NCBI GenBank assembly: GCA_024704765.1
Contig: JAKMXF010000359.1
Coordinates: forward strand, 69,381 to 133,380
From: Oopsacas minuta
Taxonomy: Eukaryota; Animalia; Porifera
DNA length: 64,000 nucleotides
Reading direction: 5' to 3'
Shown here in pieces: positions 15,649-62,969 of the stretch; within the stretch, counting starts at the first letter, position 1; every line of letters starts with the position of its first letter. The notes under the pieces were generated by a model. The model saw only the letters and a list, made by a program, of their open reading frames with translations, was not told where the DNA came from and did no database searches. A program made the position numbers and the translations under genes.

Positions 15649-15772
15649 ATGAATAAGTGCTGCATTAATGATCCGGATAAACGAGCTATTCAAGCAATAT
15701 CAAAACAAATTGATAAAGATATGAAGAATTCTAAGAGGAGATTGAAGACTGAAAAGAAATTGTTATTATTGG
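15649..15772 (+). CDS. GNAQ-like: G-alpha exon 1: MNKCCINDPDKRAIQAISKQIDKDMKNSKRRLKTEKKLLLL-G
   Basis: N-terminal CC palmitoylation motif, alphaN helix, KLLLL; phase-1 donor G|GTTTGT joins in frame to exon 2. Confidence 0.88.
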
Positions 15773-16843
15773 GTTTGTTGGAGTATATTTCGTAAATTTC
15801 GTTATAATTGTTTATGGAATGCTTTCCAAAACTGAGCTTTTGATAATTACCACTTGTTGATATACATAGTGCCTGCTAGCATGAATCTTTGATACTTTTG
15901 AGGACTCAGAATGTAGAGATTAGGAATTTTAGTCCCATCACATGTTTCCAATCCTAGAATATTGGGATTGTGGTCTTGTTCAATACTGGAATCCTTTGAT
16001 TGTAGATTAGTATTTACCTTCTCTTTTTGCATATTATTATTTGTTTTTAGTAATCGAAATTTTCGGAATCCCATATGTGGAATAGATAGCACATTTGAAT
16101 GAAAGGAACCTTTACTTATTTAGTCATAACTTAAGTAACTATTGCTTTGTTCGCTGAATATTGTAAAGCCATAGCATTCTATATAATAAGATACGATGAC
16201 TAGATGGCTTTTATCGAAAACCTGGACAAATTTTGATTTTTATTACTTAAAACTGGACATTCCTGGACAAATACGATTCTAACCATGGGCAAAATATTTA
16301 ACAGCAATAAACTTGTTGGAAATCGCAGATTATGAACATAGAGACTTAAATTGCTCTATCCACATACTGATATGAAATTTTATTTTGTTGAAATAGAAAT
16401 TATGAAGTATCTATTAATCTTGGTCACCTTTTGAGTACTTAATCTATAAGAAGGTGCTTCGTTTGCTCTCGTTGCATTGCTGCGAAGATTCTATGCTCCG
16501 TGCCTCGAATTTTATATTCAAAGAACAACAATTAGCTATATATAAGTACTTTTGAATCTGAAAATCTCTAATTAGCCTACTCGATTACCCCCTGTATTCC
16601 CGTTGAAACCAAGTTCTGATACTATTTAGAATGTTTACTTTATCACCTAAACGACATCAAATATTCAGTACATTTTTCCGACAACATCATAATTGGAATT
16701 AGCATACTGGAGTATGACAGATTTGCTACCATGACAGTTTTACTACCTCTATTACTGGTACCATGGATACTCCATATCCATGACGGAGTTACTACCTTAC
16801 ATGACAGAATTATTACCCTTTGATCATGACATGAAATCGTATA

Positions 16844-21352: not shown

Positions 21353-23519
21353 TTCGGCACAGGTTGTATTTTTCTATTTTTTATTATCATTATCAGTTAC
21401 CCATAAATTCTTTTTAGTAAATTTTAAATGATGACGTCATTTTCCCACATTTTGCTGTGTTCTCAAAATTCTAGCAATTTTTTTGAAATCCACATTGTCG
21501 ATTTCCTACCATCCTTCAGACCATTATTTCGCAACAGAGATACAGGCTGCGTCAGTGCCGCTGGCAATTTTTCACGATGGCGCCTGCCTCTCATACTCAG
21601 TATATTGGGTGGCTCATTTAATGACGATCTGCAACATTATGGTATACATTTTTCCTCTTCTATTCATTCATATTGTACGGTAATACGAAAGTATTTGATT
21701 TCTTATGAAATATTCCAAAAATTCTGTTTTGATTTGTCATCTCTGAGTTAAAAAGGAATGATAAATTGGATCCACAAGTATAATTCTAATAGTTATAACC
21801 CAAACGCAAATATCAAACACAACCGCACAAAATTTGCTCCTTCAGTCTTCGTTTTGTATGGTAAACATCCTTATTTGAGCATTGTGGAAATTTGTATATA
21901 ATGTATCGAAATTCGTGATTCATAAACTAATGAAAATTCTAATTATGTAAGAATTTTTTGCGGGCCGCTTAATGTATTGTGGACCCCTGTAGTAGACAAT
22001 CCATTTTAGAAAGTCTATAACAGATTTTCCTCTATTATATTTAATTTTAGAAACTGTTTTCCGTTTTTCATAAGTTTCTCGTTCTCGGGTACATAATTAC
22101 GTATATAGTCTTCTATTAAGTAGACCAAGTATGGTTAAAGTAACTTTCTTCCATCAAAGATATCACTGATTTAATTCGTTCAATTCCACTAACCCGAAAC
22201 ATGTTTTTTGAAACTTAAGTATCATGGACTTATACTCTGAGGCTTTGGCGTACTCTTTTAATGCAGTTCTTGCGGGCAACAGTTTATAGAGAATCAAGCA
22301 AAAAATAGGAACTTCCATGAGTTGTAATATAATTGCATACAAATTCCTAATTCAAACGCTGATATTAATATCAACAATAATTAAATAGAGAGAATCCAGA
22401 CTTCATCTAGAGCTAGCCTACCCCGCACCCTGGATGTTCATATATTCAATTACCCGCACCCTAGTTTATTAAGAACATGGGGATAGCACCTGATGAAGGT
22501 CAGATTTCGCGCACCCTCATGAATAGTTCTAAAAGTCACGCACCTAGATAAAGGCTTGAGAGAATCCCTTAACGCCTGCAAAAACGATTCATAGTCACAA
22601 AGTCTTTTGGCTCAGCAAATATTTATACGTATATCTTGGAGGGAGTAGCGAGTGGACCAAAATTTAGAATGCGGCCTCTTTTGAGTATTACCCAGGAGAA
22701 AATTCGACTGTACAGGGCTTGTATTGCGCTGTTACCAGGTATATGATTGACAAAGGTTTGTAGGTGCGAACTGTGTGAAAATACTGATTTAAGCTGATTA
22801 AAGTATATATTTATATATCAGAAATTGACCAACATCTAATGTTATGATTTGGCCAACAGCCGTCTAGAGAAATCTTGGAGGTTTATAGCCCACACGAAGA
22901 CCTTATGTGGCGACGACCCTCTAAATAGCCTATAAACCATTAATAACCAGATTTTTTTACTACAAGTTACCTCAGGAAGTAGCCATAGGTATATCTGATT
23001 TATATGATATCTCCATTTATTTCACGTATATAACAAGATTAATTGAATTATTTCGGAGAAAACCATATGCACATCATCATCGTGCTCGCCAGTATACTAC
23101 GAGATTTGTGAATTTCGCTTGGCGCAACTGCAACCTCATAAAGATAAATTCAGCCTCTTACCCCTATCAGTGGCCGCGGGGTAGGCCTTACCACCGTGAA
23201 GCATATAGCATTTTCTGAATGTGGTCTAAATAGGTGAAGATCATTGTGCTCTAGAGTAAGAAATGTCTTTCTATGGGAATTTTAGGTATCACCAGATATA
23301 TTATAGTATTTAGACCTTTTTTGTCAATATGGATTACTCATATTTCCGTTTGGAGAATTTAACGACATCACTCTTGTCTCGAATTTACAGTGTTCTTCAG
23401 AATGAGTTTGCTATAAGCGTGTTCCATTGTATATAGTTTGTTCATTCAGTATAAGTTGGATATATAATGTGTCCCCTTTTGCTATACCATTATTCAGCGA
23501 AAAAAGAGCTTATAGTGTA

Positions 23520-24832
23520 CAGGGTGACAATTAAGTTCTGATCCACGAATATACTCTGTTTATTCCTAAACTAGTTATTCTTTCAATCCAAATTTTCACT
23601 GACAGTTAAAGCATATTATAATAAATCTTCCTATCCAATTCTATTCGATATAACCGCCTTTTGCCTTTACTACAGCTTTAAGTCGTCCTTGAAACCATTG
23701 GACAGATTTACGGAGTTCTTCTTACGGAATTTTCTCCCATTCTATAATCAAAGCCTCCCGTAGAGATTCCAAATTTCCATGCGGAGTAGCGCAGGCTCTG
23801 CTCTGTAAAGTCCCCCAGATGGAATAGTCAAGTGGATTCAAATCCGGACTTGAAGGAGGCCATTCTTCCCTTGGACAAAAAGTCAATATTTTCCCCTAAA
23901 AGCCAGGATTGAGTTGCTTTCGAGGCATGCGCTGGCGCAGAGTCCTGCTGGAAAATCTAGGGTGTGTTTTTGAACAAGGATGAACCAGCAGATTTGATTA
24001 CAGGCTCAAGAATAAACTCTCTTTATATGTTTGCGAGTTAATTTTGACCCCTTGTGGGACAAAAATCAATTTTGTCCGAGAATCTGCTGACACCCCAGCC
24101 CAGACCATCACAGAAAGCGGTCTTTGCACTCGATCGATGAATTTAATGCTCTCAGGGATGTCTTTGCATGGCGACACAATCATTCTATCATTTTGACGGT
24201 TAGTTGCTTCATCTACCGTGAAAATCTTCTCGTCCGAAAACAATATCTGTTCAGAATCTTCATTTATGAGGCGCCACAGAAGCCTTTTGCACCTTTCAAG
24301 TCTTTTTATCCGAAGAGTGGGAGTGAGATGATGAACTGTTTGCCGTTTGAGTGATTTAAGTCCCAGGTCCTCATGTATCATCTTTCGCAATGTTTCGCGA
24401 TTAACAGGGTATTCCCTTGCCATCTTCCGGATTGACCGCCTGGGATTTCGGCGGATTTTACTGCGGAGTTTTTCCCTTAGTGCTCTCGTACGAACTGTCG
24501 CCGGTCGGCCAGAACGAGGCTTGTCCTCCACACTTTTGGTATCGATATATCGTTTAATAGTACGATAAATGAATAATCTGTTGATCTTTTCGTTTTTCAG
24601 ATTTTTCGAAATCTCGCTCTGTGTGCTCCCGTTCATAAATAATGAGATAATTTTTGACCTCTTTACTTCCATGTTGAAATTTCTGATTTTATGCGTATGT
24701 AGATTTAGATTACTGTTTGAGCATAACAGGAAGACATATATGTTAGAATATAAATGATAGAATTATAATAGAATATATTGGAAGCGTATCAGATCTATTG
24801 GAACTATGCATCAGAACTTAATTGTCACCCTG
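23520..24832 (-). mobile_element. DD37D (maT-type) element C, full length, frameshifted
   Basis: TIR cagggtgacaattaagttctgat, TA TSD; ORF 23998-24672 ends in frameshift (ESLFLSL). Confidence 0.93.
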
Positions 24833-26033
24833 TATTGATGCAACAATGTTAATACACTACGTATCCTGCATTAATATACATAGTTGTCAACTTTTGTGAA
24901 GTTTTTTCTTGAGTTTTTTCAGATGAGTTGTATATATTTAGTTTTGAAGTGAAATGGATGTCTAATAGAGCATTTACCACCATTATTGTGCAATAGTTTT
25001 CATTTTTGTATGTATGAGGGTTTCATTCAAGTATTAAGGGTCATCCGCCTATAACTGAATAGTTAGTATTTTCATATTCCTGGACTATACATTTGTTATA
25101 CGGCATAGGCAGGTTAATAACAAAATTTCTGCACTCCTGTAGGCGCGCGGCATACGCCTGGATAAACCCATTGTATGAATCACTGTGATACCTTCAATTT
25201 CCGCTGAAATTTTAGAGTAATAGTGCAAAAATAAAAGTGATGTTGTGTTCAAATACCTGAGTTTCACTTTATATTCGTGAGATTTGACAACCATGACTAT
25301 ATTGAATCTAATTTGATGATGCATCTAAAATTCCAAATCTCGATGAGTTATGGGTAATAGTTTTGGTCTTGCGTCATAGTATAGGGATCGACCCGCGATC
25401 TTGACCCAATATCCATTGACTCTTTCTCCACACTATGATCAGTTTAAACGTTATTGGAATTGGATCTCTGTCAGCATTGAATATTTTTAGATTTAACTTC
25501 ATACTTCGTATTACAAGACGTATAACTCACATGTTTTTCATAGCATCATGGATAGCGAGTAGATGGCTATATTTTGAAATTAAGGTCCAAACACGTTAAC
25601 TACTTGTGGTATGCCCTTTAAATGTATTTCCAACACGTAATTACGCTACGCGTTTACACACTTGCCTTCTCAAAATTTCTATCTCATCATCTGACTACGT
25701 AATTTCTATTTTGCATAATTTTTTAGTAGGTTTCGCCGCTGTTTTTAGCCTTCTAATGAGTAAGTTAAGTCTTTGATATTTATGTAGTATCATGATACCA
25801 TGTAGTGGTTTCGAATAGTAGAAATTTTGATGGAATGCTGATACAGTCCACTTTTGCTATTCAAATACAAATCAGATTCAGCAATTCTGATATACAGGTG
25901 TGTATTACCCCATTATCAATTTTTCGAATTGATGCAGCCAAATATTTTAGACTTATTCCCATTTTCATTTGTGCCACAAACAGCCAAGTAGCACACCGCT
26001 AGAATATTGGCACAACAATGGAATAGTGTATGA

Positions 26034-29000
26034 CAGGCACGTAGCTAGAGCAAGACATTCAGGGGGGCAAGAAGTATTTCGGGAGGGCAATTGCAGGGAT
26101 AAATATTTTTGAAAAGTTAATTACTTGTGTATAACAAGTACGACCCAGTCTCCTTTTCTTACATGTATAACTTTTTAATTCATAAAGTACCAGATTACTA
26201 GGCTAGGGAGCATTAGATTAGTCTACATTATAGTAAGAGCATTTATTAAGATACTAAACTCAATTCAGGGATACTATTTGACATTACAAAAGAAAGCGGC
26301 GGTGCTTCATCTGCTTAAAATGTTCGATCACATCATTATAACAAAGTGTTTCTGCAATATCTTTTTCAATAGATAACAGGGCAAGATGGTTGAGACGCTC
26401 AGTGGTCATTTGTGAGCGCAAACGTGTTTTTATTCTCTTAACAGATGAGAACATTCTCTCAACTTTGCAAGACGTCTGAGGGATAGTCACAAGAATTTGG
26501 TATAAGTTGAAAACATCAGGGAAAATATCTTTGTCAATCACATCCAGTACATCGATCAAAGTATTTAGCTGAGATTCATCTTTCGAGCAATAAACGAACG
26601 GAGAACTTCTATTTCACAATCTTTGATATCTATTGCATACAGTTCAGATAGTGTATTCAATTCCTGTTTGTTAAGAAAGTTTTGAGACCTTGGTAAGCAG
26701 CAATCAGCAGCCTTCATGATGCCTGATTGATCTGTACCAAAACGGGCATCCAATCCTGCTAAGATCTCGCGGACATTTTGGCGTAACAATATTTCAAGCT
26801 CTTCAAAGTTGGATGCGTTTGTGTGTCCAACAGAGCTATTTAGATATCCTTCTCTAAACCTTTCTGGAAGACGCCGTTGCCTGATTGTGTCTCTTACATC
26901 AAAATTTTCGATTTCATATTCACCAGACAAATCTTTGGCATATTCGACAACCTTGTCAAAATCGAAATTGACCAACCTTTCCCTCAGATCGGCAAGTAAT
27001 ATCAAACAAGAAGAAACAGTTGCTGTCGACTTCTGAAAAGCTTTAGTGCAAAAATCAGAGTAATCATACAGCCTACCAAAGTAAACTAAGATGGTCATAA
27101 ATTTCTTTGTTTGTAGACTACCTAGTAAAGATTTAGCTGCTAAACTTGTGTCTGCATCATTATCATTTCCAAATATGCTTAAAGTATCAAGTATGCAATC
27201 AAACCGACGCAGAAACCTTTCCACCTCCAAAGAACGGGAAGACCAACGAGTACTACATGAACGTGCAAGTTCAAGAGCTTGGACGTTGGGGGATAGCGCT
27301 CATCCTGGACGTCTATGAAAACTGCATGTCGCTTTGTTCCATTCATGAACGAATACGTCAAATCCAATATATCAAAGAAAGATTTCATCAGAGGATGTCG
27401 TTCAGCAGTTGCAGCTAATACTAAGTTAAGCCTATGTGAAGCACAATGAACATATGTGGCATTGCGATAACCTGCTCCTTTCATGCGGGCTTGGACACCA
27501 CCGTGTATTCCTGACATAACACTAGCCCCGTCGTAACCCTGCCCTACACATTTCAGAGGATCGAGCTCAAAAGGCTTAAGTAGCTCTATCAGTTTTTCAG
27601 AGATGGTGCCCGCATCCATGTCCTTCAATTCAATAAAGCCAATAGCTCTTTCTCGGACATTACCTTTATGGATATATCGCAAAGAAGCACCTAACAACTC
27701 CTTCTTAGATGCATCTTTTACTTCGTCAGCTAGAATAGCATAACAAGACGCGATTTCTACTTCACTTTTAACATAGTCTAGAAGCACTGAAGCGAGTGAT
27801 GTAAGCAAATCATTTTGAATATCTGGACTTAGCATTTTTGCATTTCCTGGAAGACTTTCTATCCTCTTGGTCACATTGCTATCATATTTTCCTAAAAGTT
27901 CTAATATTTCAAGAAAGTTCCCTTTATTAAGCGACTGATCTGATTCATCATCTCCTCGAAGAGGAATATCTTGTTTGACACAAAAAGTAATAATGTCAAG
28001 AACAGTCATTAAATGTTTCCGATTGTCATCTATGAATTTCTCATTTCGAAAATTGGGATCCAGTTGCTTATCTACCGTCCCTATTATTTGATGAATTGGC
28101 CAGACTTTCTGTGTTTCAACAGCTGCCATATGACACACAGAACTATCGTGCTTCCTGCACTTGTCGCCAAGTTTCCTCCAGTCACAAAGTCCTTTTGTTG
28201 AAAAAGTTGCTTCAGCTGTTGATCCTCCAAAAAGCCGACACGGTTGGCAAAATATAGCATCGAGTTCTTTGCTATACTCTATCCAGGAGAATTGGGCATA
28301 CCAATGAGTACTAAAATGTCTACCGGCCTCATTTTTTGGGAAGATAATAGAAGGCTGCCTCGGTTTCTCACCATTGTTGGACAAATCATTTACAGTCACA
28401 ATTGGTGATTGTATATGAGTCGTGTTTAAACTTGGAGTTGAAATAGTTGTACAAGAATCGGAAGTTAAAGGGGTCGAAACTTGAATACTCGTAACAACAG
28501 GCTCTACCTCCTCATAATTTGAAGAGACGACATGATCTTCGATTTCTATTCGATTTCTTTTAAAATATGCCTGAACTTTGCTTTGTTGTAGTCTTTTAGT
28601 CATCTAGAATTGTTTGAGATACGAGTCACTGAACTGATTGAAGAACAGAAAATGTGAAAGATTTGATGATATAGAATGACTTTATAACTTATAGAGAATA
28701 TCTGAAATTGGCTTCACTCATGTGTAAATTTCAAAACAAGCTTTGAAAACTGAAACCCTAAGAGCATCACCAATGCTTCAATTACTTCAATGGACAGTCT
28801 AACTTCTGACAACAATTACTAGCGGTCGTGGTAATTCAATTAAAATTATAGTCGAAATTCAGTGCCTGTCAAAATAGAACAAGTTTACTATCAATGAGCG
28901 TTACTTCCTGTCTAGTATTAAAACCATCATCGCAACGCGAGTTATTAATTTCATAGTTTTGACGATGCAGTTGAAGTACATAGGCTATTAATTACAGTGG

Positions 29001-29229
29001 AGTTCGCTTATTAGCAACTCGGATTTTGCAGAGATTCGGTTGCTAATAGGACAACGAAATTAACATTATAATCCCGTTTGGGACCCGAAAGCTGGTTGCT
29101 AATAGAGCAATATTACTAATAAGCTAACTACATTGTATATAAAAACAAAACTTCCAAATTTATCTGGGGGGCGAGAAAAACTTTTGGGGGGGCGACTGCC
29201 CCCCCTTGACCCCCGTAGCTACGTACCTG
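26034..29229 (-). mobile_element. hAT element (TTF-type Zn finger / DUF4371 / dimerisation-domain transposase), left copy
   Basis: TIR cagg(c/t)acgtagcta; ORFs 27179-28603, 26565-27230, 26284-26559 (YSKELDAIFCQPC, ILADEVKD, GQGYDGASVMSG, HCASHRLNL, SCKVERMFS). Confidence 0.95.
28995..29135. mobile_element. Decayed Tigger-type MITE carried inside the hAT 5' region (twin at 32916-33056)
   Basis: TA|cagtggagttcgcttattagcaa ... ttactaataagctaactacattg|TA. Confidence 0.7.
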
Positions 29230-31465
29230 ATTTAGCCAATGAGAAAATGCCTTACTTCAACATGTACATCTAATGAGGGTCAGAATATCAGAATCGGAAA
29301 TATAAGGGGATTCAGATATTTGGGTATAGAATTATATTCTGAAAGTCATTAGATACAATAGGGGTGCAAATTATCGCTGCCATGACCCATGTTCCTAGAA
29401 ATTAATCCTACAATGAAGGGACATTTTCTCACAGGAGGCTGTTTTCATTAATGGTAAAAGTGAAATATATACAGTTAAAAATAATGGAATTGTATATTGG
29501 GAATAAATAGTTAGTATTTTATGTTTTGTTTCAACTTAGGGATTAAAATAGTTCTGGATACTACATCTTTCTAAATTTAACTCTTTGAATCATTATGAGG
29601 AAGAAAATCTATAATAGCATAGTAGTAAAATTACAATAATTTTTAATTATCTTTGTAAATTTTGCTGTTAGTGCTACGAGTGTGAAGTTGCCTAGTATTC
29701 GATAATCTGAACTTGAATCACAAATTATACTCGCCCGTACACATGAGTTAATTCAATTGGTACCATTCGATAGAGGATGGCTGAACGTTTTAGGCAATAG
29801 AAATTATTTTCAAAAATTTTGCTTTATAAAGCACAAAATTCACAAACCACAAAAATTTCAAGTATGCCAATATTAACAAGGAAATCCCCATATATTACTC
29901 CTTATTAAACCGTAATATATTTAGTAACACCAGAACTAAAATTTTTCGAGATTCCAATTATATTATACACACTGGGTTAACTTGCTATAGAGTCAATAAA
30001 AGTTGACTGTCCAGGTAGTTCAGAAGTCCAAGGTTTCAAAAAGGAGTCACTAGATGAAGGATAAATTTGAGAATACAATGTTGCGACATTCGAGGAACAT
30101 TACTGCGTAACCAGGCAAGATATATTCCCGAAAATAGTCACTAACCTCACAAAAATGTGAAATATTTCACTGATAGTACACTCGCTTAAAAAACAAAAGG
30201 AACGATCATGCATTTTGACACAGTAGAATTATCAGACACTTTGAGGTTGTTCCACAACACAAATTACTCATCCTCGGGTTTAGTTCTAACTCCAATTTCC
30301 ATTGTCGGCCACAATAGATCACTTAATCGACATACTTTGAAGGTGTTAAAATTCAGCTAACGGCCACAATCTAATCCATTCCGATATTCGTAAACAGGAT
30401 AAATTCCCAATTGGTAGATTGATCAATTCAACAGATATTGTTCATAGCAACGGAAAAATATCTCAGGAATATGAAAATATTACATTCTCAAAATTATACG
30501 CGTGTTACTCACATATTTTGTCATTGAAGCGATTATGCAAAATGGACATATTTATAATGGACGGGATAATTATTAGTTTGTGTCAGACCGATTATATACA
30601 TTATCCTTCACAAATATTCTTAGGTAATTAATAAAATAGATCAAATGATTACCACACCTGTCTATTATGGTTAAAATCTATAGCGATCACCTGTATGCAA
30701 CCGCTACTTTAAATAGCTCCTTCTGTGGACGTTAGAGATCACCTGGGAATCTTTGTTAATTCCAGGGGTCTAACCGGGAAATTATAACACATTTATATAA
30801 TAATAAAATTTAAACCAAGGTTGGATCCGAATAGTTAAATATTCGGTTACCAACAGAATATTAGTACGTATTAGATATTCAGTCGGCTGAAACCGAATAG
30901 TATCAGTAGTCTTCAGTTGAATCAAAAGAATATTATCAGTATAGGTTAAGGCTACCATTCATGAATATACTGATATAAGGCGTGAGGGGTTTCAACCTTG
31001 CTTAGCATTTACCGAGAGTTTGCAGTCATTAGATTGAACATGAAATATAAAAATCACGATTTAAAGTGCAAGGTAATTATAGACTTTGAAATAGTAGTCT
31101 GAATTCCTGCAATACTTTTAGAACTAAATACTATTTCTAACCTCAGAATTATGGCCATTTGCTATAACAATAGTTCACAACATATTGAATAAATAGATTA
31201 GATCTTTTTATTACGCATGTTTATGTAGCATTAAATCCCGGGCTCAATCCTGTCCGGGAAAAATATTTTCCAAATAGATAACTAGTGGCAGTTATAGACA
31301 AGTTGACAATACAAGTTGTACTTGTCCCTGCAAGATGTAGGCAAGTTAGATCTGAGTTTTCATAGTTATATGCACAAGCCATCTTCATTCTGGGAATTAC
31401 GCTGCTGAAACGAGGCAGGAAGTTCTAATCATCTTTGGAATTAGATGCCTTCAGTAATCGCAATA

Positions 31466-31866
31466 CAGTATTTCCTTGAATAGTAGCCAGGGGCATTATA
31501 CGTCTCAAGGACCATAAGAGGAGGTTAAGGCATTTGTAAATAGGTTAATTTGTTAAAAAGGTTAATTTTGTTTTGTAATCCGTACTTGTTTTTATCCCAA
31601 GTCAAGGCAGCAAGAAGATTTAAATTGGTCAGGGTGACCAATACAAAATATATTGAGTTATTAAAGTTGGCCCCGATGAGCTAATACTAGTCTTATTAGC
31701 AGTCAAGGATTGGCCCAGTTGAAACATGACAGACAAGAGCGTTTCCCACGGCCAGGAAAGTAAAAGTAGTTAAATGAATATACAGAGAAGGAATTATTCT
31801 TTTAGGTATATATAAGAATTTCTTACGCTCTCAGGAGGTGAAGGGGCTCTATTCAGGGAAATATGG
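31466..31866. mobile_element. pogo/Tigger-type MITE in the inverted spacer
   Basis: TA|cagtatttccttgaatag ... ctattcagggaaatatgg|TA. Confidence 0.5.
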
Positions 31867-32819
31867 TATCTCATAACTAAAACCCTTTCTTCTAAATAGT
31901 AAGGGGAATAACAACAATACTCTCGAACTAGTTTGGGAAATTACACATAATCCAGAGGAGAAAGTTCAACGTTGAGATCAATCAACTATCAAATGCTATA
32001 CTCCAATTACATACTTACATCTACGTACTATGTATTTGCATGACTCTAACTGGAATTAGATAACTTATTTTTTTGCAGACTATTTTGATGTAAATGCAGT
32101 ACACCATCAATTACCTGAGCACCTTTGAATACACTTTCAAGTTATGTGTTGGAAAACTGAAATAGAATATTTTCCTATATAAATATCACTGCTTATGCAT
32201 ATCCAATATACAAGATTTTGGAATTTGAATATATGAATGTATACCTTCGCCCTATGGGTGTAAGATGGTCACATCATTCGTAGACCTAGTTCTAAAGTAA
32301 TATAAAGCAGGCTTCTGAGATGAAGGTGGAATAATTTTGAATATACACTAATCGAACACAATTACTTGCACACCACAATAAATACAATTCTAAATCCTGG
32401 AAACAGGGCGAATATTTGATTTTGCAAACTATAATATCCCTCAAAGAACTATTCGGCTAGGAAAATTAACTTTTCCTGCCCAAGTAGTATTTTAGAATTA
32501 CACATTTTAAAGCTTGACTATATTAAATAGATAATGAGTTATGAATATCTATTCCACTCTTAATTGTACAAAATTCAAATGAGATGGAGCAATTTAGATC
32601 TAAGGATGTGTATTACTCCAGTATCAATTTTTCGAACTGATTAGAGTAAATCTTGTTGACTTGTTAGCATTTTCATATTTATGCAACAAGTGACAGAAGT
32701 GGCACATTCGAAAGTATGTATGCACAACTTCGTATGTTGATTAATATGTTCAAAATCGACATATCAAACTATACAAATATTTTAAATTTGTTTAGAGAGT
32801 GGTAAGTGATTTCATACAC

Positions 32820-35800
32820 CAGGTACGTAGCTACGGGGGGGGCAAGGGGGGGCAGTCGCCCCCCCAAAAGTTTTTCCCGCCCCCCAGATAAATTTGGAAG
32901 TTTTGTTTTTATATACAATGTAGTTAGCTTATTAGTAATATTGCTCTATTAGCAACCAGCTTTCGGGTCCCAAACGGGATTATAATGTTAATTTCGTTGC
33001 CCTATTAGCAACCGAATCTCTGCAAAATCCGAGTTGCTAATAAGCGAACTCCACTGTAATTAATAGCCTATGTACTTCAACTGCATCGTCAAAACTATGA
33101 AATTAATAACTCGCGTTGCGATGATGGTTTTAATACTAGACAGGAAGTAACGCTCATTGATAGTAAACTTGTTCTATTTTGACAGGCACTGAATTTCGAC
33201 TATAATTTTAATTGAATTACCACGACCGCTAGTAATTGTTGTCAGAAGTTAGACTGTCCATTGAAGTAATTGAAGCATTGGTGATGCTCTTAGGGTTTCA
33301 GTTTTCAAAGCTTGTTTTGAAATTTACACATGAGTGAAGCCAATTTCAGATATTCTCTATAAGTTATAAAGTCATTCTATATCATCAAATCTTTCACATT
33401 TTCTGTTCTTCAATCAGTTCAGTGACTCGTATCTCAAACAATTCTAGATGACTAAAAGACTACAACAAAGCAAAGTTCAGGCATATTTTAAAAGAAATCG
33501 AATAGAAATCGAAGATCATGTCGTCTCTTCAAATTATGAGGAGGTAGAGCCTGTTGTTACGAGTATTCAAGTTTCGACCCCTTTAACTTCCGATTCTTGT
33601 ACAACTATTTCAACTCCAAGTTTAAACACGACTCATATACAATCACCAATTGTGACTGTAAATGATTTGTCCAACAATGGTGAGAAACCGAGGCAGCCTT
33701 CTATTATCTTCCCAAAAAATGAGGCCGGTAGACATTTTAGTACTCATTGGTATGCCCAATTCTCCTGGATAGAGTATAGCAAAGAACTCGATGCTATATT
33801 TTGCCAACCGTGTCGGCTTTTTGGAGGATCAACAGCTGAAGCAACTTTTTCAACAAAAGGACTTTGTGACTGGAGGAAACTTGGCGACAAGTGCAGGAAG
33901 CACGATAGTTCTGTGTGTCATATGGCAGCTGTTGAAACACAGAAAGTCTGGCCAATTCATCAAATAATAGGGACGGTAGATAAGCAACTGGATCCCAATT
34001 TTCGAAATGAGAAATTCATAGATGACAATCGGAAACATTTAATGACTGTTCTTGACATTATTACTTTTTGTGTCAAACAAGATATTCCTCTTCGAGGAGA
34101 TGATGAATCAGATCAGTCGCTTAATAAAGGGAACTTTCTTGAAATATTAGAACTTTTAGGAAAATATGATAGCAATGTGACCAAGAGGATAGAAAGTCTT
34201 CCAGGAAATGCAAAAATGCTAAGTCCAGATATTCAAAATGATTTGCTTACATCACTCGCTTCAGTGCTTCTAGACTATGTTAAAAGTGAAGTAGAAATCG
34301 CGTCTTGTTATGCTATTCTAGCTGACGAAGTAAAAGATGCATCTAAGAAGGAGTTGTTAGGTGCTTCTTTGCGATATATCCATAAAGGTAATGTCCGAGA
34401 AAGAGCTATTGGCTTTATTGAATTGAAGGACATGGATGCGGGCACCATCTCTGAAAAACTGATAGAGCTACTTAAGCCTTTTGAGCTCGATCCTCTGAAA
34501 TGTGTAGGGCAGGGTTACGACGGGGCTAGTGTTATGTCAGGAATACACGGTGGTGTCCAAGCCCGCATGAAAGGAGCAGGTTATCGCAATGCCACATATG
34601 TTCATTGTGCTTCACATAGGCTTAACTTAGTATTAGCTGCAACTGCTGAACGACATCCTCTGATGAAATCTTTCTTTGATATATTGGATTTGACGTATTC
34701 GTTCATGAATGGAACAAAGCGACATGCAGTTTTCATAGACGTCCAGGATGAGCGCTATCCCCCAACGTCCAAGCTCTTGAACTTGCACGTTCATGTAGTA
34801 CTCGTTGGTCTTCCCGTTCTTTGGAGGTGGAAAGGTTTCTGCGTCGGTTTGATTGCATACTTGATACTTTAAGCATATTTGGAAATGATAATGATGCAGA
34901 CACAAGTTTAGCAGCTAAATCTTTACTAGGTAGTCTACAAACAAAGAAATTTATGACCATCTTAGTTTACTTTGGTAGGCTGTATGATTACTCTGATTTT
35001 TGCACTAAAGCTTTTCAGAAGTCGACAGCAACTGTTTCTTCTTGTTTGATATTACTTGCCGATCTGAGGGAAAGGTTGGTCAATTTCGATTTTGACAAGG
35101 TTGTCGAATATGCCAAAGATTTGTCTGGTGAATATGAAATCGAAAATTTTGATGTAAGAGACACAATCAGGCAACGGCGTCTTCCAGAAAGGTTTAGAGA
35201 AGGATATCTAAATAGCTCTGTTGGACACACAAACGCATCCAACTTTGAAGAGCTTGAAATATTGTTACGCCAAAATGTCCGCGAGATCTTAGCAGGATTG
35301 GATGCCCGTTTTGGTACAGATCAATCAGGCATCATGAAGGCTGCTGATTGCTGCTTACCAAGGTCTCAAAACTTTCTTAACAAACAGGAATTGAATACAC
35401 TATCTGAACTGTATGCAATAGATATCAAAGATTGTGAAATAGAAGTTCTCCGTTCGTTTATTGCTCGAAAGATGAATCTCAGCTAAATACTTTGATCGAT
35501 GTACTGGATGTGATTGACAAAGATATTTTCCCTGATGTTTTCAACTTATACCAAATTCTTGTGACTATCCCTCAGACGTCTTGCAAAGTTGAGAGAATGT
35601 TCTCATCTGTTAAGAGAATAAAAACACGTTTGCGCTCACAAATGACCACTGAGCGTCTCAACCATCTTGCCCTGTTATCTATTGAAAAAGATATTGCAGA
35701 AACACTTTGTTATAATGATGTGATCGAACATTTTAAGCAGATGAAGCACCGCCGCTTTCTTTTGTAATGTCAAATAGTATCCCTGAATTGAGTTTAGTAT

Positions 35801-36017
35801 CTTAATAAATGCTCTTACTATAATGTAGACTAATCTAATGCTCCCTAGCCTAGTAATCTGGTACTTTATGAATTAAAAAGTTATACATGTAAGAAAAGGA
35901 GACTGGGTCGTACTTGTTATACACAAGTAATTAACTTTTCAAAAATATTTATCCCTACAATTGCCCTCCCGAAATACTTCTTGCCCCCCTGAATGTCTTG
36001 CTCTAGCTACGTGCCTG
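32820..36017 (+). mobile_element. hAT element, right copy (inverted twin of 26034-29229)
   Basis: Same TIRs; all three ORF translations identical to the left copy, including two shared frameshifts. Confidence 0.95.
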
Positions 36018-37102
36018 GACTAAATTGTGGATTTAATTGATATTATCGGTGTTTTTGTCTTCCAAACTGCGAGTTAGAAAATATACAATTACCATCTCCA
36101 AAAACATTGACCTAATGAAATCACCTACTTTCATTCTTTTTCAATATTACCTTTTCTATCTGGTAGAACATTAACTGGCGTATTGATTTACACAAAATTA
36201 TTCACTTCCTTCAAGGTATTAATTGCATATAATATGCCTATTGAAAATCATTTTTTCCCGGGTAATAAAGTACATTATTTCATTTTACTTGATAAGTGCT
36301 ACCTCCAATATCAAGGTTATTCTCAATAACCTTGATATTGGATTTAGTGCTCTCATATTATATGTATTTTCAAAATGCCTACAAAAGGGATACCTTTGCC
36401 TGTAAGTTACGCCAATTAATTTTACAGTTTCATCCTCAAATTCCTTAGATATTTTGTTACTAATTTCTATCTCTATGCAAATTATTGCCAGTCAATTTAG
36501 AAATCTCTGATTATTTTATGTTGTAACTTGTTGCAGTTAATTGTAATTGATCTGCCTCATTTACCACAGACTAATTATAGAATGCTCAAGAAGTCTTGAT
36601 TTCAAAATTTCAAAATTTTCATATGGGTAGTACTAGTCCATGTTGTTTAACGATAATATCTGAATTGCTGCTAATCATTCTAATTCTGAGCATTTTATTA
36701 GTTGATCAATTTTATTAATTCCATACATACCTAAGATTGTAGTTCTCAATTGTATAACTAATTCCTAGAATTCTTAGAAAGTTCGTGAATAAGTGCCATG
36801 AACTAGATCGATATCTTTCATCACTTCATTTAGTTTAATGAAACTGATTGTAGAAGATACAGACTCAATCATTGCCACCATGTGCCACTTGTTCCCATCT
36901 TTTTGCAATGGGGGCAATTGAAAAACGTGGTACAATAGTGATACTCGACGTTAATTTTCAAACATTTCAATATCTAATAGAATATTCAAGCATCTTCAAT
37001 TGTAAATTCGGATGTGCCATTGTCAGAACTAGATTGCAACTTCTCATTTAATGCATATCCAATTCTGCAATTATTCGATTTAGTTTATTACTTGTTTTTT
37101 AG

Positions 37103-37287
37103 GTACTGGTGAAGCTGGAAAGACCACATTTATTAAACAAATGAGGATAATTCATGGAGTTGAGTATGACGAAAATGAAATATTAGAGTTTAAAAAAACT
37201 ATTTTTCAAAATATTTATGACGCTATTGCAAAATTAGGAGATGCAATGATTGAGTTCAAAATATCTTATAGGACAAATCTCCCTGAG
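37103..37287 (+). CDS. GNAQ-like: G-alpha exon 2: GTGEAGKTTFIKQMRIIHG...YRTNLPE
   Basis: P-loop and KQMRIIHG; acceptor ttttttag, donor GTAAGT; 185 nt. Confidence 0.96.
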
Positions 37288-37667
37288 GTAAGTGTCTCCT
37301 TTAGAATTTTGATTGCCTATCGTTTCTGAAGTGATATGTGGCAATGTAGTAAGTTCAGCAAATTTGATCATGGATTTGTGACCCCTCCCTCAAGTAAACA
37401 CTTGTATCTATAGAACCGTTGGGTTTTACTCGAAGGATAGTATTTTATCATTGTAGAAATTCATTTCTTCGATTAGAGTTCTAAAATTTGGAAATTCTGC
37501 CAATTATTTTGTCTATATTACTCATTATTTTCGAAATTTTCTGCGTCTTATCTGTATATCCAATGTAATGCTAAAAACTAACATTGAAATCAAATTTTAT
37601 ATTATCAAATGATGTTTTACAAATATACAAATTTATTTTGCATAATTTGCACATTCCTGAATAATTA

Positions 37668-38962
37668 CAAGGGTTGTTCAATAAATAGTGAGACTGTTTT
37701 TCATAATTCATATAGTAACCCGATACTTATCATAATTGATTATCAAATGTTTCGATAAATTCCCCCTTAAACTATATGCATCGTTTCCATCGTTTTGGTA
37801 ACTTTTCCATCCCAGTGTGGTATAGAATTCTTTAGGTGTCCCTTTTTCCCACTGTTTTCTTTCGTACTCCAGCCGTTTGAAATCCTCAAATCCCTTCCCT
37901 CGAAGAGGTCCCCTCATCTCTCCAAACAGCCAGTAGCCGCTGGGAGCCAGGTCTGGACTATGCGGGGATGAGGGAGGCATTCAAACCCTAAGTCGTCAAT
38001 TGCAGTCATTGTCTTGGAGCTTACATGGGGCCTTGCGTTGTCATGTTGCAGCAGTACGCCACGTGTTAACTTTCTCTCGCCTCTCACGTTTATTCGCTTG
38101 ACGCAATTCGTTCAATTCGTCAACGTAATAATCACTGTTCATGGTTGTCTTCTCAGGCAACCAGTCGAGGTGGATAATTCCTTCCCTATCCCAAAGTACT
38201 GTTGTCACTCTCTTCCCTGCTGATTTTGCGGCCTTTACTTTGATATGTACCAGTTCATCACGTCCCTTCCACTGCTTCGATTGAGTTTTACCCTCTGGTT
38301 CATAATAATGAAACCAAGTTTAATCCCCCTTTACTATACGTTCCAAAAGTCTTCCTCTACCAGATATCATGAAAGTAATTCTTTGCTAACTCTGACCCTT
38401 TCGCGTTTTTGTTCTTTTGAAAGAAGTTTCGAGACGCAACGCGCAGTTACCTTCGACATTTCCAGATCTTCAGTAATAATCGAGTGTAGTGTGGCTTTTG
38501 ATATACCTACCCTCTCTTCTAACTCTCGCAGGGTTATTCGTCTGTCCTCCTCGATATTTCTGCGGGTTTTGGAGGAAGTCGCACAACCTGGAAGAGGATC
38601 ATCGTGGCGGACCTTATCGCCATTATCAAAACGTTCGATCCATCTATATATGGTGGCTTTCGAAGGACATTCATCTCCGAAAATATCCTGCATTTCACGA
38701 ATAATGTATGAGTCAGTCTTCCCCTTTTTCCACAGGTACCAAAATATTTGTCGTTTTCCTTCTTTGCTAAAATCCACTAGTTAAAAAAAGTAGCCTATGC
38801 AAATGAAACTTTATACTGAAGAATATGCTAGGAGAGTAAAGAGTATTGTGTATAGAAGTTAGACAATCAAGTTAGGCTTGTAATCTGATATTAGGCTTAG
38901 AGCTGTATTAACTAGAATATGAATCCGATACATTAGTCTTATTACTTATTGAACAACCATTG
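37668..38962 (-). mobile_element. mariner (DD34D-type) element G, defective
   Basis: TIR caagggttgttcaataa; fragments 38367-38777 and 37708-37980; HDNARPH...SPDLAPSGYW (third Asp replaced by Gly). Confidence 0.92.
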
Positions 38963-40081
38963 CATAACCCGAAATCATTGAATTATGATCGAATCAGGAT
39001 AGCTAATTTAAGGTAAATTTCAAGCTTAACATATCCTTGTAGTACAATTAGACAAAGTATTCCATACCAATGTGACCTAATCATGGTTATGCCCATATAT
39101 GGTCATTTCAAGATTGCGAAATTAACTTTAGCGATATCATATCAAACGTATCACAAGTATACGTTAAGTTGGATCCGGAATATATATTGGTTATCCTGAT
39201 TTGACTATAATTTCAACGATTATCGAGTCATATGTTGATTTTGACAAACTTCACCCATGTTCTCTACTGTAACTCAGAAGCGTGCCAACTAATCATAAAA
39301 ATTTTTATCATATTTTCTGTAGAACAATTTACAGATATACATGCGATCGAAGTTAGGTCAATTTAGAGGAATTTATTTTGTAAATTAATGCTTATTAATC
39401 AAATATATTGGCACAAATAGAAAAATTTGCTCTATTGGACTGATGGAATGTATTTCTAACATTATGGTATACTAACTAAGCAGGAAGTGAAATTAGTGCA
39501 TATATGTCTAAAACTGTCTGATGTCGATATAATAAGGATATCACTATAAATTGAAGGTGTTTAGGTAAACCCTGTTATCCACGGACTTCTTAAAATTGAC
39601 TTCATTTACGCTAATGATATATTTCTTGCGCAGAAAGTCAACTGGATAAGGAAATTTGAGAATATTATAATATATGGAAAGATGTATATATCTCATATCG
39701 TACATCCTACAAATATTTTCAGGATACAAATATGACCGTTTGACACATAAAATATGACTTACTAGAGTACAATAATGCATTATTAGTGTTCAGTATTAGC
39801 AGATTCCGGGATATCAAGAAGTTTACTATCCTGTTATGGCCTAAGCTAATCTCACAGTATAACGAAGGCCATGTATCTAAGGACTCTGAACTGGGACATA
39901 AACCAGTATTCACAGATGGTGTCATTCAAGATTGGATCATAAATTTAAAAGATAGAATATGAAGATATTGTGGCATGGAAAGTAGGGATCACACTAAGTA
40001 CATATTTGTAAATCACTTAAAAACAGAAATACAAGATATCCAGTCTTGATTATTGGCAAATTGTACCATCCCCGGTATCTA

Positions 40082-42759
40082 CAAGGGTTGTTCAATAAGT
40101 AATGAGACTAATGTATCGGATTCATATTCTAGTTAATACAGCTCTAAGCCTAATATCAGATTACAAGCCTAACTTGATTGTCTAACTTCTATACACAATA
40201 CTCTTTACTCTACTAGCATATTCTTCAGTATAAAGTTTCATTTGCATAGGCTACTTTTTTTAACTAGTGGATTTTAGCAAAGAAGGAAAACGACAAATAT
40301 TTTGGTACCTGTGGAAAAAGGGGAAAACTGACTCATACATTATTCGTGAAATGCAGGATATTTTCGGAGATGAATGTCCTTCGAAAGCCACCATATATAG
40401 ATGGATCGAACGTTTTGATAATGGCGATAAGGTCCGCCACGATGATCCTCTTCCAGGTTGTGCGACTTCCTCCAAAACCCGCAGAAATATCGAGGAGGAC
40501 AGACGAATAACCCTGCGAGAGTTAGAAGAGAGGGTAGGTATATCAAAAGCCACACTACACTCGATTATTACTGAAGATCTGGAAATGTCGAAGGTAACTG
40601 CGCGTTGCGTCTCGAAACTTCTTTCAAAAGAACAAAAACGCGAAAGGGTCAGAGTTAGCAAAGAATTACTTTCATGATATCTGGTAGAGGAAGACTTTTG
40701 GAACGTATAGTAAAGGGGGATTAAACTTGGTTTCATTATTATGAACCAGAGGGTAAAACTCAATCGAAGCAGTGGAAGGGACGTGATGAACTGGTACATA
40801 TCAAAGTAAAGGCCGCAAAATCAGCAGGGAAGAGAGTGACAACAGTACTTTGGGATAGGGAAGGAATTATCCACCTCGACTGGTTGCCTGAGAAGACAAA
40901 CCATGAACAGTGATTATTACGTTGACGAATTGAACGAATTGCGTCAAGCGAATAAACGTGAGAGGCGAGAGAAAGTTAACACGTGGCGTACTGCTGCAAC
41001 ATGACAACGCAAGGCCCCATGTAAGCTCCAAGACAATGACTGCAATTGACGACTTAGGGTTTGAATGCCTCCCTCATCCCCGCATAGTCCAGACCTGGCT
41101 CCCAGCGGCTACTGGCTGTTTGGAGAGATGAGGGGACCTCTTCGAGGGAAGGGATTTGAGGATTTCAAACGGCTGGAGTACGAAAGAAAACAGTGGGAAA
41201 AAGGGACACCTAAAGAATTCTATACCACACTGGGATGGAAAAGTTACCAAAACGATGGAAACGATGCATATAGTTTAAGGGGGAATTTATCGAAACATTT
41301 GATAATAGTTATATACAAAATTGTGGAACGATTTTGATGATTAAATGACAATAGCTGAAATTGAAGAATTTGAAGGGATTGCTTATGAATGGGTTAAGTA
41401 TATATCCACAACAGGTCTAGAATTTGTAATTTTCTAGTTGGAAGATTGTACCAATATGCGATTAAATATATATGAAATTAAACATACAGTTATGTTTATT
41501 ACCAACTAAATCATATCAACATTTACTATCACTAGTACGCTGTGCTTCCTTGCGCTACGCGGATTCTAACACTTCGTGTCTGTACTCGGCCTTCGGCCCT
41601 CGCTTTCACTATTAGTTTGTGTGATATTCGGATTCAGCGTAACCCGATTACCCCATAATAACCGTTGAAACCACGTTTCCAGGATTATTTTGAAATTTGT
41701 TTACTTTTCGTTTACTTTATATTCATATAAACAACTAAAATTTGTATGACAAATCCATGAGTGTGATTCGGATTCAGCATATTCGCTAACCTTCCGTCAA
41801 GTTTATGAAATTTGTATATTTTCTTGATTAACACCATAGATATATAGATACATGCATTTTTGCAACTACGAATTCCACATTCCATTCCAGCTTCCCTAGC
41901 AACGGACAAACGGACAGACAGACAGATAAACAGATAGCAGCGACAATGATAGTATCTCCATTACTATCATTGTCACTGCAAATGTCCAATATTTCAAATG
42001 GAACTGTGCAGGTAGGTCCTCTGAATGTGGAACTGGCCTAATGGCGGACGGTACGTCTGGTTACGCAATAGTGGATTTATTCTTTATTGTGATACCATCA
42101 ATTTTCGTCATCCAGTAATGACAATCTGAAAGAAGACACATTGGTTCTCTCCATATCATTGGAACCGCAAACGGGATTATATTTCTCTTCCCAGCATACC
42201 ACAAGCGTCTTTCAGGCATTGTGTGCAGCCCACGGCTTATCTTGATCCCCGAGATGGCATCCAAAATTAGCGAAATAACAGTTTTCTACAGCTTTTGTGA
42301 TTTTGTCATTGGTTAGTTGTAGTATACCTCCCACAAATATAACAATACTTTTCGGAGAATTTTTGCAAACCAGAGAAGCCATAAACAATAAAATGAACGA
42401 AATATACTAAATGTCGAGTGGAATAAAACAGATTATAACTACTATTAGAGGCAATTTAGATCATGTAAGCAATGAAACCAAATAAATTGGATGTTGATGT
42501 GTAGAATTGAATTTAGAAATATTTTTGACCATGTGGTCAGCTAAAAGATCGGCATAACTAAAATAGAAATTTCTTACTTTTAGTACCCTCGAGAACGAAA
42601 AACATTGATAATAATTCCCAACATATATCTACACTATGCAAAACACTAGAGAAAGAAGATCATTAAGAATGTTGTATATCAGTGTAATCAATTATGATAT
42701 ATATCGGTTTACTATATGAAATATGAAAAACAGTCTCAGTATTTATTGAACAGCCCTTG
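40082..42759 (+). mobile_element. mariner element H (inverted twin of G) carrying a 1.38-kb Chapaev-derived insertion near its 3' end
   Basis: TA|caagggttgttcaataag ... tattgaacagcccttg|TA; ORF fragments identical to G. Confidence 0.92.
41306..42684 (-). mobile_element. Non-autonomous Chapaev3-type derivative, copy 2
   Basis: Homologous to 10174-11542; TAA TSD (41303-05, 42685-87); the empty site gaTAAtcaattatg is visible in sister element G. Confidence 0.88.
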
Positions 42760-44246
42760 TAAGTGGATATTGACAAAACATATGTCATTTATCGTCTCTC
42801 CTGTTACTCAGAACCGTGCCAAATTTATCATGACAAACCTTTGGATATTTTCTCCAGAAACTGTTTGAATCATTTAGTATTTCAACATTTGATCAAATAT
42901 CAATATTTTGGCTAAATTAGTGTTTGCTATAGAAATATATTGGCACATTTCGAAAGAATTTGCTTTTCCTTACTGATGGTATGTATTTCTTTTGGGAAAT
43001 TCATATTTTCTATGGTGACTTAGCTTATGGTCAGAATCATGGCTTAAGGATATTTATCACATCGAAGGGTACCTGTGATTCAAATTTCAAATTTGATATT
43101 CTACAAGCTGACAATCATGTTTTAATTTCGCCATTGATTGAATTTCCCCCAAGACTCGAACTTGTCCGAGTTGGCCCAAAATACCTATGTATGCTTAAAA
43201 TCTGCCATGGGGGTCTTCCATTCTCTTCTAACAATTCTGGACCTACTAACATATATTACATGCTTAAATTTATATTGAGATTAATTGAGTTTTCATTGTA
43301 TAGATTCGTGTATTAATCGGCTCAGAGCTCATGAAAGTTTATTTCGATCTTTCATGATCAGAGGGAGTTTACTATTTCATGCAATTGTAGTACTTTTATA
43401 TTTCTTCTTTTATGTACCTGCAGTGGAATCCGGATTTATCCTAATTCTTTCCAAAATTTATTTGTCTGGAAGTATACTTCTTATACACTTCCTTGTTTTA
43501 TTTTAATGAAGAGAACAGATATTTCTTTTGACTCACTTTCAAAATTTGTGCTTTGTATTTTTATTTTCATTGATTACAATCCATCCTGGCAAAATTATTG
43601 AACAAGACTGTCTTTGTCCATTACGAATTGCCCTACCGCACATTTTTCCCAATATTGTTTTATTTAGGGCCGATCCCTCGTTTAAGAAGTGTTTTCAATG
43701 GCACTTGTATTTAGCAATAATATTACCCATTCATATGTTATTAATATGTTAGATATCTAAACTAAGTTATACAAGCTTTTTTACTTTGCCCAATGGATAC
43801 CAAGTGGCCCCTTTTGATACAAAGATTTTTGTAATTGAATTTTTATGTTCATTCTTTTATTCATTCTTTTATTCTGCCTTTTGTATGACTAAAATCAAAT
43901 TGTCTATAGCGACTCCTAATGTTTGGAATTTCTTCTTCCCACACAAAATCATGTCCCACAATGGCTGTTCATTTGGAACAATTTACTGCTAACTCCTGAT
44001 TAAGCGAATAGATTTTAGCCATCATTTGGTGTTCGTATTTTCATGTTTCACTGTACTTATTTTTTGTACGGTTAAACCTTCAGGAAGTTAACACTCTGGA
44101 ACAGCCAAATGTTCACATATGAGAGGTGTTCACTTTGAGAAAGAGAAAGTGTGCTCATCTTTTGGAGGTGTTCACTTTTGTACATTTATTTGTACTCCCT
44201 GTTCATCTAATTCAGTTTTGAGTTCTTTTAATGTGTATTTCTTTAG

Positions 44247-44413
44247 GATATAATGAACGAATTGTTTGATGTTACTGGAGCTGGAATAGTCGAATTGCCT
44301 TCAATTATTCCTAACCATCATGTTGATGCAATCCAGAGATTTTGGAGTGATGATGGTATACAAGAATGTTTCCGTAGAAGAAGTCAATTTCAACTCATTG
44401 ATTCCGCACAGTA
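44247..44413 (+). CDS. GNAQ-like: G-alpha exon 3: DIMNELF...AIQRFWSDDGIQECFRRRSQFQLIDSAQ-Y
   Basis: Helical-domain motif W.D.GIQECF.RR..FQL.DSA; acceptor tttctttag, donor GTGAGT; 167 nt. Confidence 0.96.
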
Positions 44414-57121: not shown

Positions 57122-57123
57122 TA

Positions 57124-62517: not shown

Positions 62518-62840
62518 AATTTATAGAGATACAGATTATCTCTTAGGTTTACTGCGAAAATTTCACCATTCTTTGAGAATTTCTGCATATTTTGAGTTGG
62601 AAAAGGGGAAATAGCTGAAATCTCGGGGAAATATTTAATCCAGGATTAAAATCCGACATTTTGTAAATGGGGTTGGTAATTATGCTGGCCCCCTAGCGCC
62701 GCCATTGCTTTCTGCATTATTTTATCACTTTCATTCGAGACAGCTTGTTTTATTATACATAGATAGAAGGGTGCTTTTTCCTTAATCCCTGATTAAGGAT
62801 TTTCATTCTGTCTCTTATTATTTTTCTTTTTCGGATATAG

Positions 62841-62969
62841 TTTTCTGGATAATATTGTAAGAATCTCACAACCTCATTACTCACCATCTATTGATGACAT
62901 TCTAAGATCGAGGAAAGCGACTACAGGGATTCAAGAGTATCCTTTTGATATATCCAGTATAACTTTCAG
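62841..62969 (+). CDS. GNAQ-like: G-alpha exon 4: FLDNIVRISQPHYSPSIDDILRSRKATTGIQEYPFDISSITF-R
   Basis: Switch I (Arg183/Thr186 equivalents), EYPFD; acceptor ...atatag, donor GTTCAA; 129 nt. Confidence 0.94.

Follow-up and report, generated by a model that had tools for sequence, protein, structure and literature searches.

Can cut-and-paste transposons that lie as close inverted pairs in an intron turn around the DNA between them, and do they go on doing so? The question is raised by a 64-kb stretch of the genome of the glass sponge Oopsacas minuta (C359:69381-133380, hereafter the window; C359 is contig JAKMXF010000359.1 of assembly GCA_024704765.1), in which the introns of a gene for a G-protein alpha subunit (G-alpha), read on the + strand, hold three inverted transposon pairs. 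A first-pass annotation had described the two close pairs as flip-flop palindromes, whose spacers are repeatedly flipped by recombination between the arms. The reading favoured here, which we hold to be moderately probable, is that of two independent transposon-made micro-inversions inside introns 1 and 2 of the G-alpha gene. The genome comprises 61.46 Mb in 365 contigs with ~36% G+C. Transposon copies have been compared in a sample from the genome, which comprises the copy tables for four families together with 37 copies that were fetched.

Exchanged flanks of two inverted transposon pairs

The two close pairs belong to unrelated superfamilies, as the first-pass annotation had it, and this is confirmed by Pfam and by self-comparison. 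Elements A and A', separated by a 3590-bp spacer, are assigned to hAT from a DUF4371 match (E 3e-25), and B and B', separated by 1119 bp, to mariner from the HTH_48 domain of Mos1 (E 7e-9). The hAT pair lies in intron 1 together with a Tc1-like element, C, the mariner pair in intron 2, and the inverted partner of C, element D, in intron 3 (Table 1). The near-identity of the arms has also been confirmed: A and A' are 99.81% identical over 3198 columns, with four mismatches and one 2-nt gap, and the identity of B and B' is 99.59% across the inner 1225 bp, falling to 92.3% in the outer 78 bp. By the list of open reading frames (ORFs) and Pfam, neither spacer contains a host-gene exon or an ORF of at least 120 aa.

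The hAT spacer is bounded by target duplications that have changed partners. The octamer that adjoins A on its left, GTGTATGA, and the one that adjoins A' on its left, TCATACAC, are reverse complements at 8 of 8 positions, and the octamer to the right of A, ATTTAGCC, agrees with the reverse complement of that to the right of A', GACTAAAT, at 7 of 8. The first 8 bp of the spacer (ATTTAGCC) therefore pair with positions 36018-36025 and its last 8 bp (TCATACAC) with 26026-26033, and neither A nor A' carries a direct duplication of its own. Ordinary matching duplications have been found in 13 of the 14 other scorable hAT copies. A and A' are sisters by descent, because they share 11 changes, spread along the whole element, that occur in none of 23 other copies. 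Among these private changes are a +GG frameshift and a G-to-A substitution that lies 5 bp short of the right terminus, and the transposase ORF is 474 aa long in both copies as against 772 aa in intact ones.

The mariner target duplication is TA and hence uninformative on exchange. A palindromic miniature inverted-repeat transposable element (MITE) that is split between the spacer and the outer flank of B' provides the corresponding evidence. The reverse complement of 42761-42900 joined to 38963-39330 aligns as one high-scoring segment pair, running across the junction, with the palindromic MITE at 13342-13868, and each of the two unflipped joins finds its match on a single side. Because the split MITE rejoins only in the flipped order, the junction alignment shows the mariner spacer, as far as this repeat can tell, to be reversed too. 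The proposal that both spacers are flipped and exon-free has thus been borne out, in the assembled sequence, by the exchanged hAT duplications, the split MITE and the lack of an exon in either spacer.

In each case, the event would have involved a pair of oppositely oriented sister copies of a single cut-and-paste element, with the intervening DNA reversed between them. The signs by which inversion through ectopic recombination is recognised, homologous, oppositely oriented copies at the breakpoints together with exchanged target duplications, are present at the locus. Two routes could lead to such a structure. In a hybrid-element insertion (route a), the left end on one chromatid and the right end on its sister would insert together nearby after replication, and the product in one step would be x[A]t'..S'..x'[A']t, as is seen for the hAT pair. 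In route b, ordinary local reinsertion in inverted orientation would be followed by a single crossover between the copies.

Delprat et al. found that exchanged duplications fit ectopic recombination and hybrid-element insertion alike, identical copies favouring the hybrid element and chimeric copies ectopic recombination (PMC2775673). A and A' are too alike (5 differing sites, 11 shared private changes) for parental types to be told apart and chimerism to be read. Routes a and b are inseparable from the sequence, and either would explain the origin of the pairs. In rice, close inverted pairs arose from a single Ds at 1%, after which homologous recombination inverted the intervening segment, and both routes therefore have experimental precedent (PMC3429523).

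Age of the copies and probable homogenisation of their interiors

The hAT pair appears to be young, about as old as its family. The other young full-length copies differ from A by 24-33 substitutions (99.0-99.25% identical), and A' differs from it by 4. Because the family is young and the copies are sisters, the near-identity of A and A' can be explained without homogenisation, and recent origin would nearly suffice. None of the five differences between A and A' is more than 180 bp away from an end of the element (4/360 sites at the ends against 0/2836 in the centre, Fisher 1.6e-4). Intact 772-aa open frames are present in two other copies (L031 and L034), which makes a transposase source for the family plausible.

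The mariner family has a median pairwise identity of 90.5%, and no intact transposase gene has been found in 30 of its copies, in which the longest open frame is at most 286 aa. The non-autonomous element E, which is inserted in B', has closest relatives that are only 91-93% identical to it. Between B and B' a single difference is found among 1075 central sites, as against 9 among the 220 sites at the ends (Fisher 9e-7). Since the family and the E insertion are old and the B/B' centre is clean, interior conversion appears to be needed: the mariner pair is best read as old, with an interior homogenised by non-allelic gene conversion, and some homogenisation of the arm interiors is likely. The end zones hold 2 + 2 shared private changes alongside the 9 differences, so the case for sisters by descent is weaker than in the hAT pair. 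The earlier claim of homogenised cassettes consequently stands for the mariner interior and lapses, as a necessity, for the young sister copies of the hAT pair.

Two further ideas about B' have been set aside. Molecular-clock dating from its 75-bp outer piece was rejected, the counts being too few and internally inconsistent. A homogenisation tract bounded by the E insertion is unneeded, since the same boundary ~70 bp from the end is found in mariner sister pairs without E.

The first-pass annotation had tied homogenisation to closely spaced inverted pairs, and other same-contig pairs bear on this. The mariner copies L019 and L028 (C326:61875-63180 and 144303-145601) are inverted and 81 kb apart, with 20/208 end and 0/1088 centre differences. 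L020 and L027 (C301:245029-246346 and 298398-299702), also mariner, are in direct orientation at 52 kb, with 18/211 end and 10/1090 centre differences. In both of these sister pairs the ends are 8-12% diverged, 26-34 private changes are shared and the flanks are not alignable. The hAT copies L050 and L053 (C296:399913-403098 and 446219-449393), inverted at 43 kb, have 7/305 end and 0/2824 centre differences, all of them at position 112 or within ~110 bp of the right terminus. Each of these two copies keeps its own intact 8-bp duplication, so that the pair is unflipped, and yet it is as identical as A and A'. L050 and L053 have 87 private changes in common and belong to an old, decayed lineage ~4.3% from the young copies, which suggests a recent mobilisation in trans or conversion.

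Shorter distances do not bring higher identity. An inverted mariner pair 9.5 kb apart on contig C199 is 94.2% identical, a mosaic with one clean 420-bp tract. The hAT copies L036 and L055, 12 kb apart, show 9 differences, all within ~430 bp of an end or of an internal breakpoint in L055. Other same-contig pairs at 70-98 kb are unrelated (~88%). Among the sampled copies, the pairs with matching interiors other than those of the window are all same-contig neighbours.

Because the flanks of the distant mariner sister pairs are not alignable, an origin of these pairs by segmental duplication has been rejected. The mariner copies L058 and L059 (C363:21885-23177 and 109858-111148), which lie 88 kb apart, have the same internal deletion and are 94% identical including their flanks, are a true segmental duplication; their differences are even, in contrast to the clean-centre sister pairs. 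Hypermutable ends have been rejected as the cause of the dirty mariner ends, since divergence across the family is 9-11% at the ends and 9.4% in the centre. For the hAT ends this explanation keeps some force: within the family, variability at the right end, where G/C runs abound, is roughly double that in the centre, although singleton changes show only a mild excess at the ends (15%, with 11% expected).

The pattern of clean centres and dirty ends thus appears to be general to same-contig copies in either orientation, out to at least 81 kb, and to spare the last ~70-250 bp of the element. Its presence at 43, 52 and 81 kb and in a direct pair, together with only 94% identity at 9.5 kb, means that interior homogenisation, which is plausible, is neither specific to close palindromes nor dependent on distance. 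The distance dependence that had been proposed, and the restriction to close inverted pairs, therefore find no support. Non-allelic gene conversion among dispersed transposon copies has been reviewed, with higher rates for closer and more alike copies (PMC6598467), and there, likewise, the interior of a copy is overwritten by a nearby copy. The review deals mostly with Alu and regulatory elements in mammals and flies, whereas the sponge tracts appear to take in nearly a whole DNA transposon, bar the termini, in pairs up to 81 kb apart.

Competing explanations and known systems

Several observations weigh against two micro-inversions. No empty-site or opposite-orientation allele is present in the assembly, where only the window itself matches through the flanks, and the ancestral order is for this reason drawn solely from the duplications and the split repeat. 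The mariner pair has a duplication of no more than TA, and its split MITE is a palindrome in its own right. The clustering of the A/A' differences at the ends is not predicted by a simple young pair, so that some conversion or collapse is needed, and the substitution counts in the ~75-bp outer piece of B' exceed the molecular-clock expectation. Furthermore, because near-identical inverted arms collapse in an assembly graph, the flipped state hangs on the threading of long reads through collapsed arms, and sparse interior differences may have been merged.

This last point is the core of the best-surviving alternative, an assembly artefact in which the inverted arms were collapsed to one edge and the spacer mis-threaded, mimicking exchanged duplications. 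The O. minuta genome has been assembled with SPAdes (k = 21-99) from Illumina and Canu-corrected PacBio reads, followed by SSPACE, Pilon and GapFiller (PMC10280926), and the assembly used here is probably this SPAdes hybrid. A de Bruijn-graph assembly of this kind is in keeping with the artefact, as is the observation that the surviving differences lie mostly within read or insert reach of a unique anchor, including those beside E and beside the hAT breakpoint on contig C2. On the other hand, both pairs are flipped, which random threading of truly unflipped pairs would give at most 1/4 of the time, and the scaffold is continuous, with no N. In the C/D pair, 15 even differences have been kept as far as 615 bp from an anchor, which shows that differences survive where they are dense, and collapse cannot create the 26-34 shared private changes that stand beside 8-12% diverged ends in the mariner sister pairs. 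We regard the artefact, with its merging of differences, as unlikely but deserving of attention, and an artefact of the spacer orientation as such is unlikely to much the same degree.

In the flip-flop model, recombination between the arms repeatedly flips the spacers and homogenises closer arms more strongly, selection purges the flips that would disorder exons, and both orientations coexist. The flipped state of both close spacers agrees with this, as do the clean arm interiors with differing arm ends and the more diverged 32-kb C/D pair with its even differences, and recurrent inversion between homogenised inverted repeats has been documented in yeast (PMC9731477) and humans (PMC3961182). 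However, exchanged duplications record an odd number of inversions, of which the simplest is one, and a one-step insertion of a hybrid element is equivalent; the repetition that was proposed is thus more than the data call for. The proposed filter by selection on exon order, on which three pairs bear, finds no support in the controls either. Clean centres are equally strong at 43, 52 and 81 kb, including the direct pair, the 9.5-kb inverted pair reaches only 94%, and the unflipped pair L050/L053 matches A/A' in identity.

The comparison with invertons made in the first-pass annotation finds no support in the make-up of the pairs. The arms are whole transposons, the only Pfam domains in and around the region are transposase-related (ORFs of at least 120 aa), and the spacers carry no host exon, no recombinase gene and, at that threshold, no ORF. 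Coexisting orientations, finally, are not demonstrable from a single assembly, and the flip-flop model as a whole is improbable.

A still more active state, in which the cassettes invert measurably to this day in the germ line or soma of single animals, both orientations coexist and the clean-centre pattern stems from unusually active intrachromosomal recombination or gap repair in a compact genome, seems very improbable, and there is no sign of present-day flipping or of a function. If it were true, excision gaps, for example, might be filled from the closest copy on that chromosome, or excised copies might recombine with it. Transposon interiors would then be continually overwritten from up to ~80 kb away, with occasional resolution as an inversion. 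The remaining candidate, in which each pair would be one large composite or foldback-type transposon whose terminal inverted repeats measure kilobases, has the overall shape of two long inverted arms around a spacer in its favour but is barely credible and has been rejected, since every arm is a whole element that possesses its two terminal repeats, these elements are also found singly elsewhere with ordinary duplications, no other genome match reaches into the flanks or spacers, and the outer flanks are not a matching duplication.

Two independent micro-inversions, the favoured reading, can be set beside systems that are already known. The Galileo inversions 2j, 2q7 and 2z3 of Drosophila buzzatii (PMC2775673) likewise show copies in opposite orientation, exchanged duplications and the same ambiguity between ectopic recombination and hybrid-element insertion. 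They are megabase-scale chromosomal inversions, whereas those of the sponge measure 1.1 and 3.6 kb and are intronic. Chimerism was decisive in 2z3, whereas the sponge copies are too alike to show it and one arrangement is known. With rice Ds, itself a hAT element (PMC3429523), one element likewise gave rise to a close inverted pair in a gene, and the segment was inverted by homologous recombination or through the ends of mixed copies. The rice events were experimental, with active transposase and tissue culture, whereas the sponge locus is a natural fixed or assembled state, and has a second, unrelated mariner pair with the same outcome.

Chloroplast inverted repeats and the palindromes of primate sex chromosomes are further flip/flop regions between homogenised arms, besides those of yeast and humans. 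The FF region of Saccharomyces chromosome XIV (PMC9731477) and the recurrent inversions at human inverted repeats (PMC3961182) likewise have near-identical arms around an invertible spacer, with identity kept by conversion. These regions show both orientations, or recurrence, across many genomes, whereas the sponge locus is one state with transposon arms, and its homogenisation signature is also seen in direct and distant pairs.

The locus is therefore a fresh example of a known phenomenon, with precedents in Galileo, Ac/Ds, the yeast and human inverted-repeat inversions and non-allelic conversion, and the understanding of inversions and of G-protein genes is unchanged by these results. If the assembled order is right, it is a neat natural case of cut-and-paste transposons reshaping introns with exon order untouched, in which two elements of different superfamilies have, pair by pair, left the same footprint in one gene. 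It could serve as a test bed, one-step aberrant transposition and inter-copy recombination predicting the same structure. Same-contig copies with identical interiors and diverged ends would also bias insertion dating that is based on divergence, although the assembly method may produce part of the pattern.

The G-alpha gene and its other transposons

Four exon pieces of the G-alpha gene have been located in the window, with approximate coordinates (Table 1). The exons were searched singly against the Pfam profile and not as a joined protein; the profile positions of exons 2, 3 and 4 ascend, so that exon order is collinear.

Table 1. Positions in the window of the G-alpha exons, the three transposon pairs and the sequences adjoining them
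Feature	Position	Strand	Basis or remark
G-alpha exon 1, coding part (MNKCC...KLLLLG)	15649..15774	+	Motif scan; no Pfam match on its own; KLLLLG end runs on into the exon 2 P-loop
Tc1-like element C, intron 1	23518..24835	-	98.7% identical to D
Target duplication x of the hAT pair (GTGTATGA), on the outer left of A	26026..26033		Reverse complement of 32812-32819
hAT element A, both terminal inverted repeats, frameshifted transposase	26034..29229	-	DUF4371 match, 474-aa ORF
Spacer 1, 3590 bp, exon-free, apparently reversed relative to its order at insertion	29230..32819		Duplications at both ends
hAT element A', inverted twin of A	32820..36017	+	Self-comparison
Target duplication y' of the hAT pair (GACTAAAT), on the outer right of A'	36018..36025		Reverse complement ATTTAGTC matches 29230-29237 at 7/8
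Open frame with G-alpha exon 2, P-loop TGEAGKTTFIKQMRIIHG	37084..37296	+	Pfam G-alpha E 8e-15, profile 25-83
Mariner element B, complete, decayed	37668..38962	-	HTH_48 match; terminal repeat CAAGGGTTGTTCAATAA at both ends
Spacer 2, 1119 bp, apparently reversed; starts with half of the split palindromic MITE	38963..40081		Junction alignment
Mariner element B', inner 1225 bp	40082..41306	+	99.59% identical to B
Element E, 1.38 kb, non-autonomous, TAA duplication, inserted in B'	41307..42687	+	Probably Harbinger-like
Mariner element B', outer terminal piece	42688..42760	+	Six substitutions relative to B; two private changes in common with B
Second half of the split MITE, flanking B' on the outside	42761..42900		Junction alignment
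Open frame with G-alpha exon 3	44247..44411	+	Pfam G-alpha profile 106-142
Tc1-like element D, intron 3	57121..58440	+	Self-comparison with C
G-alpha exon 4, switch I RKATTGIQEYPFD	62836..62970	+	Pfam G-alpha profile 144-186

The P-loop of G-alpha proteins is usually GxGESGKST. Here it reads GTGEAGKTT, a departure that marks the gene as a divergent paralogue.

The third inverted pair, C and D, encloses exons 2-3, which are still collinear by their profile order. Its Tc1-like assignment draws on weak Tc3-type HTH matches. C and D are 98.71% identical over 1320 columns at a distance of 32.3 kb, with 15 substitutions and 2 gaps that are evenly spread, so that the pair is more diverged than the close ones, as had been stated. 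The two copies are mutually closest, the other copies in the genome being 88-96% identical. Three long inverted transposon pairs in the introns would give kilobase hairpins in the pre-mRNA, and an inverted pair that brackets exons, as C and D do, favours exon circularisation.

Another hAT-like element, at 54734-57107 on the - strand, adjoins D and has a Dimer_Tnp_hAT match at 54734-55015. Elsewhere in the genome, two hAT copies are of unusual structure. L034 (C222:1335621-1338817) is full-length, with its 772-aa frame intact, but its flanks, GGGTGTAG and AGTATACT, do not match, which may be the trace of a further rearrangement. In L055 (C2:65509-69199), whose closest relative is L036, 12 kb off, the first 838 bp are inverted and lie 490 bp upstream of the remainder (positions 835-3196), so that one of the two breakpoints of this inversion falls within the element.

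The four closest copies of the E type (41307-42687 and 10170-11548 in the window, C359:21734-23114 and C359:134145-135510) all lie on one contig in the same orientation, a distribution that suggests local spread. A large share of the 64-kb window is transposon-derived, and Tc1/mariner fragments are also found at 3-848 and 8793-9652.

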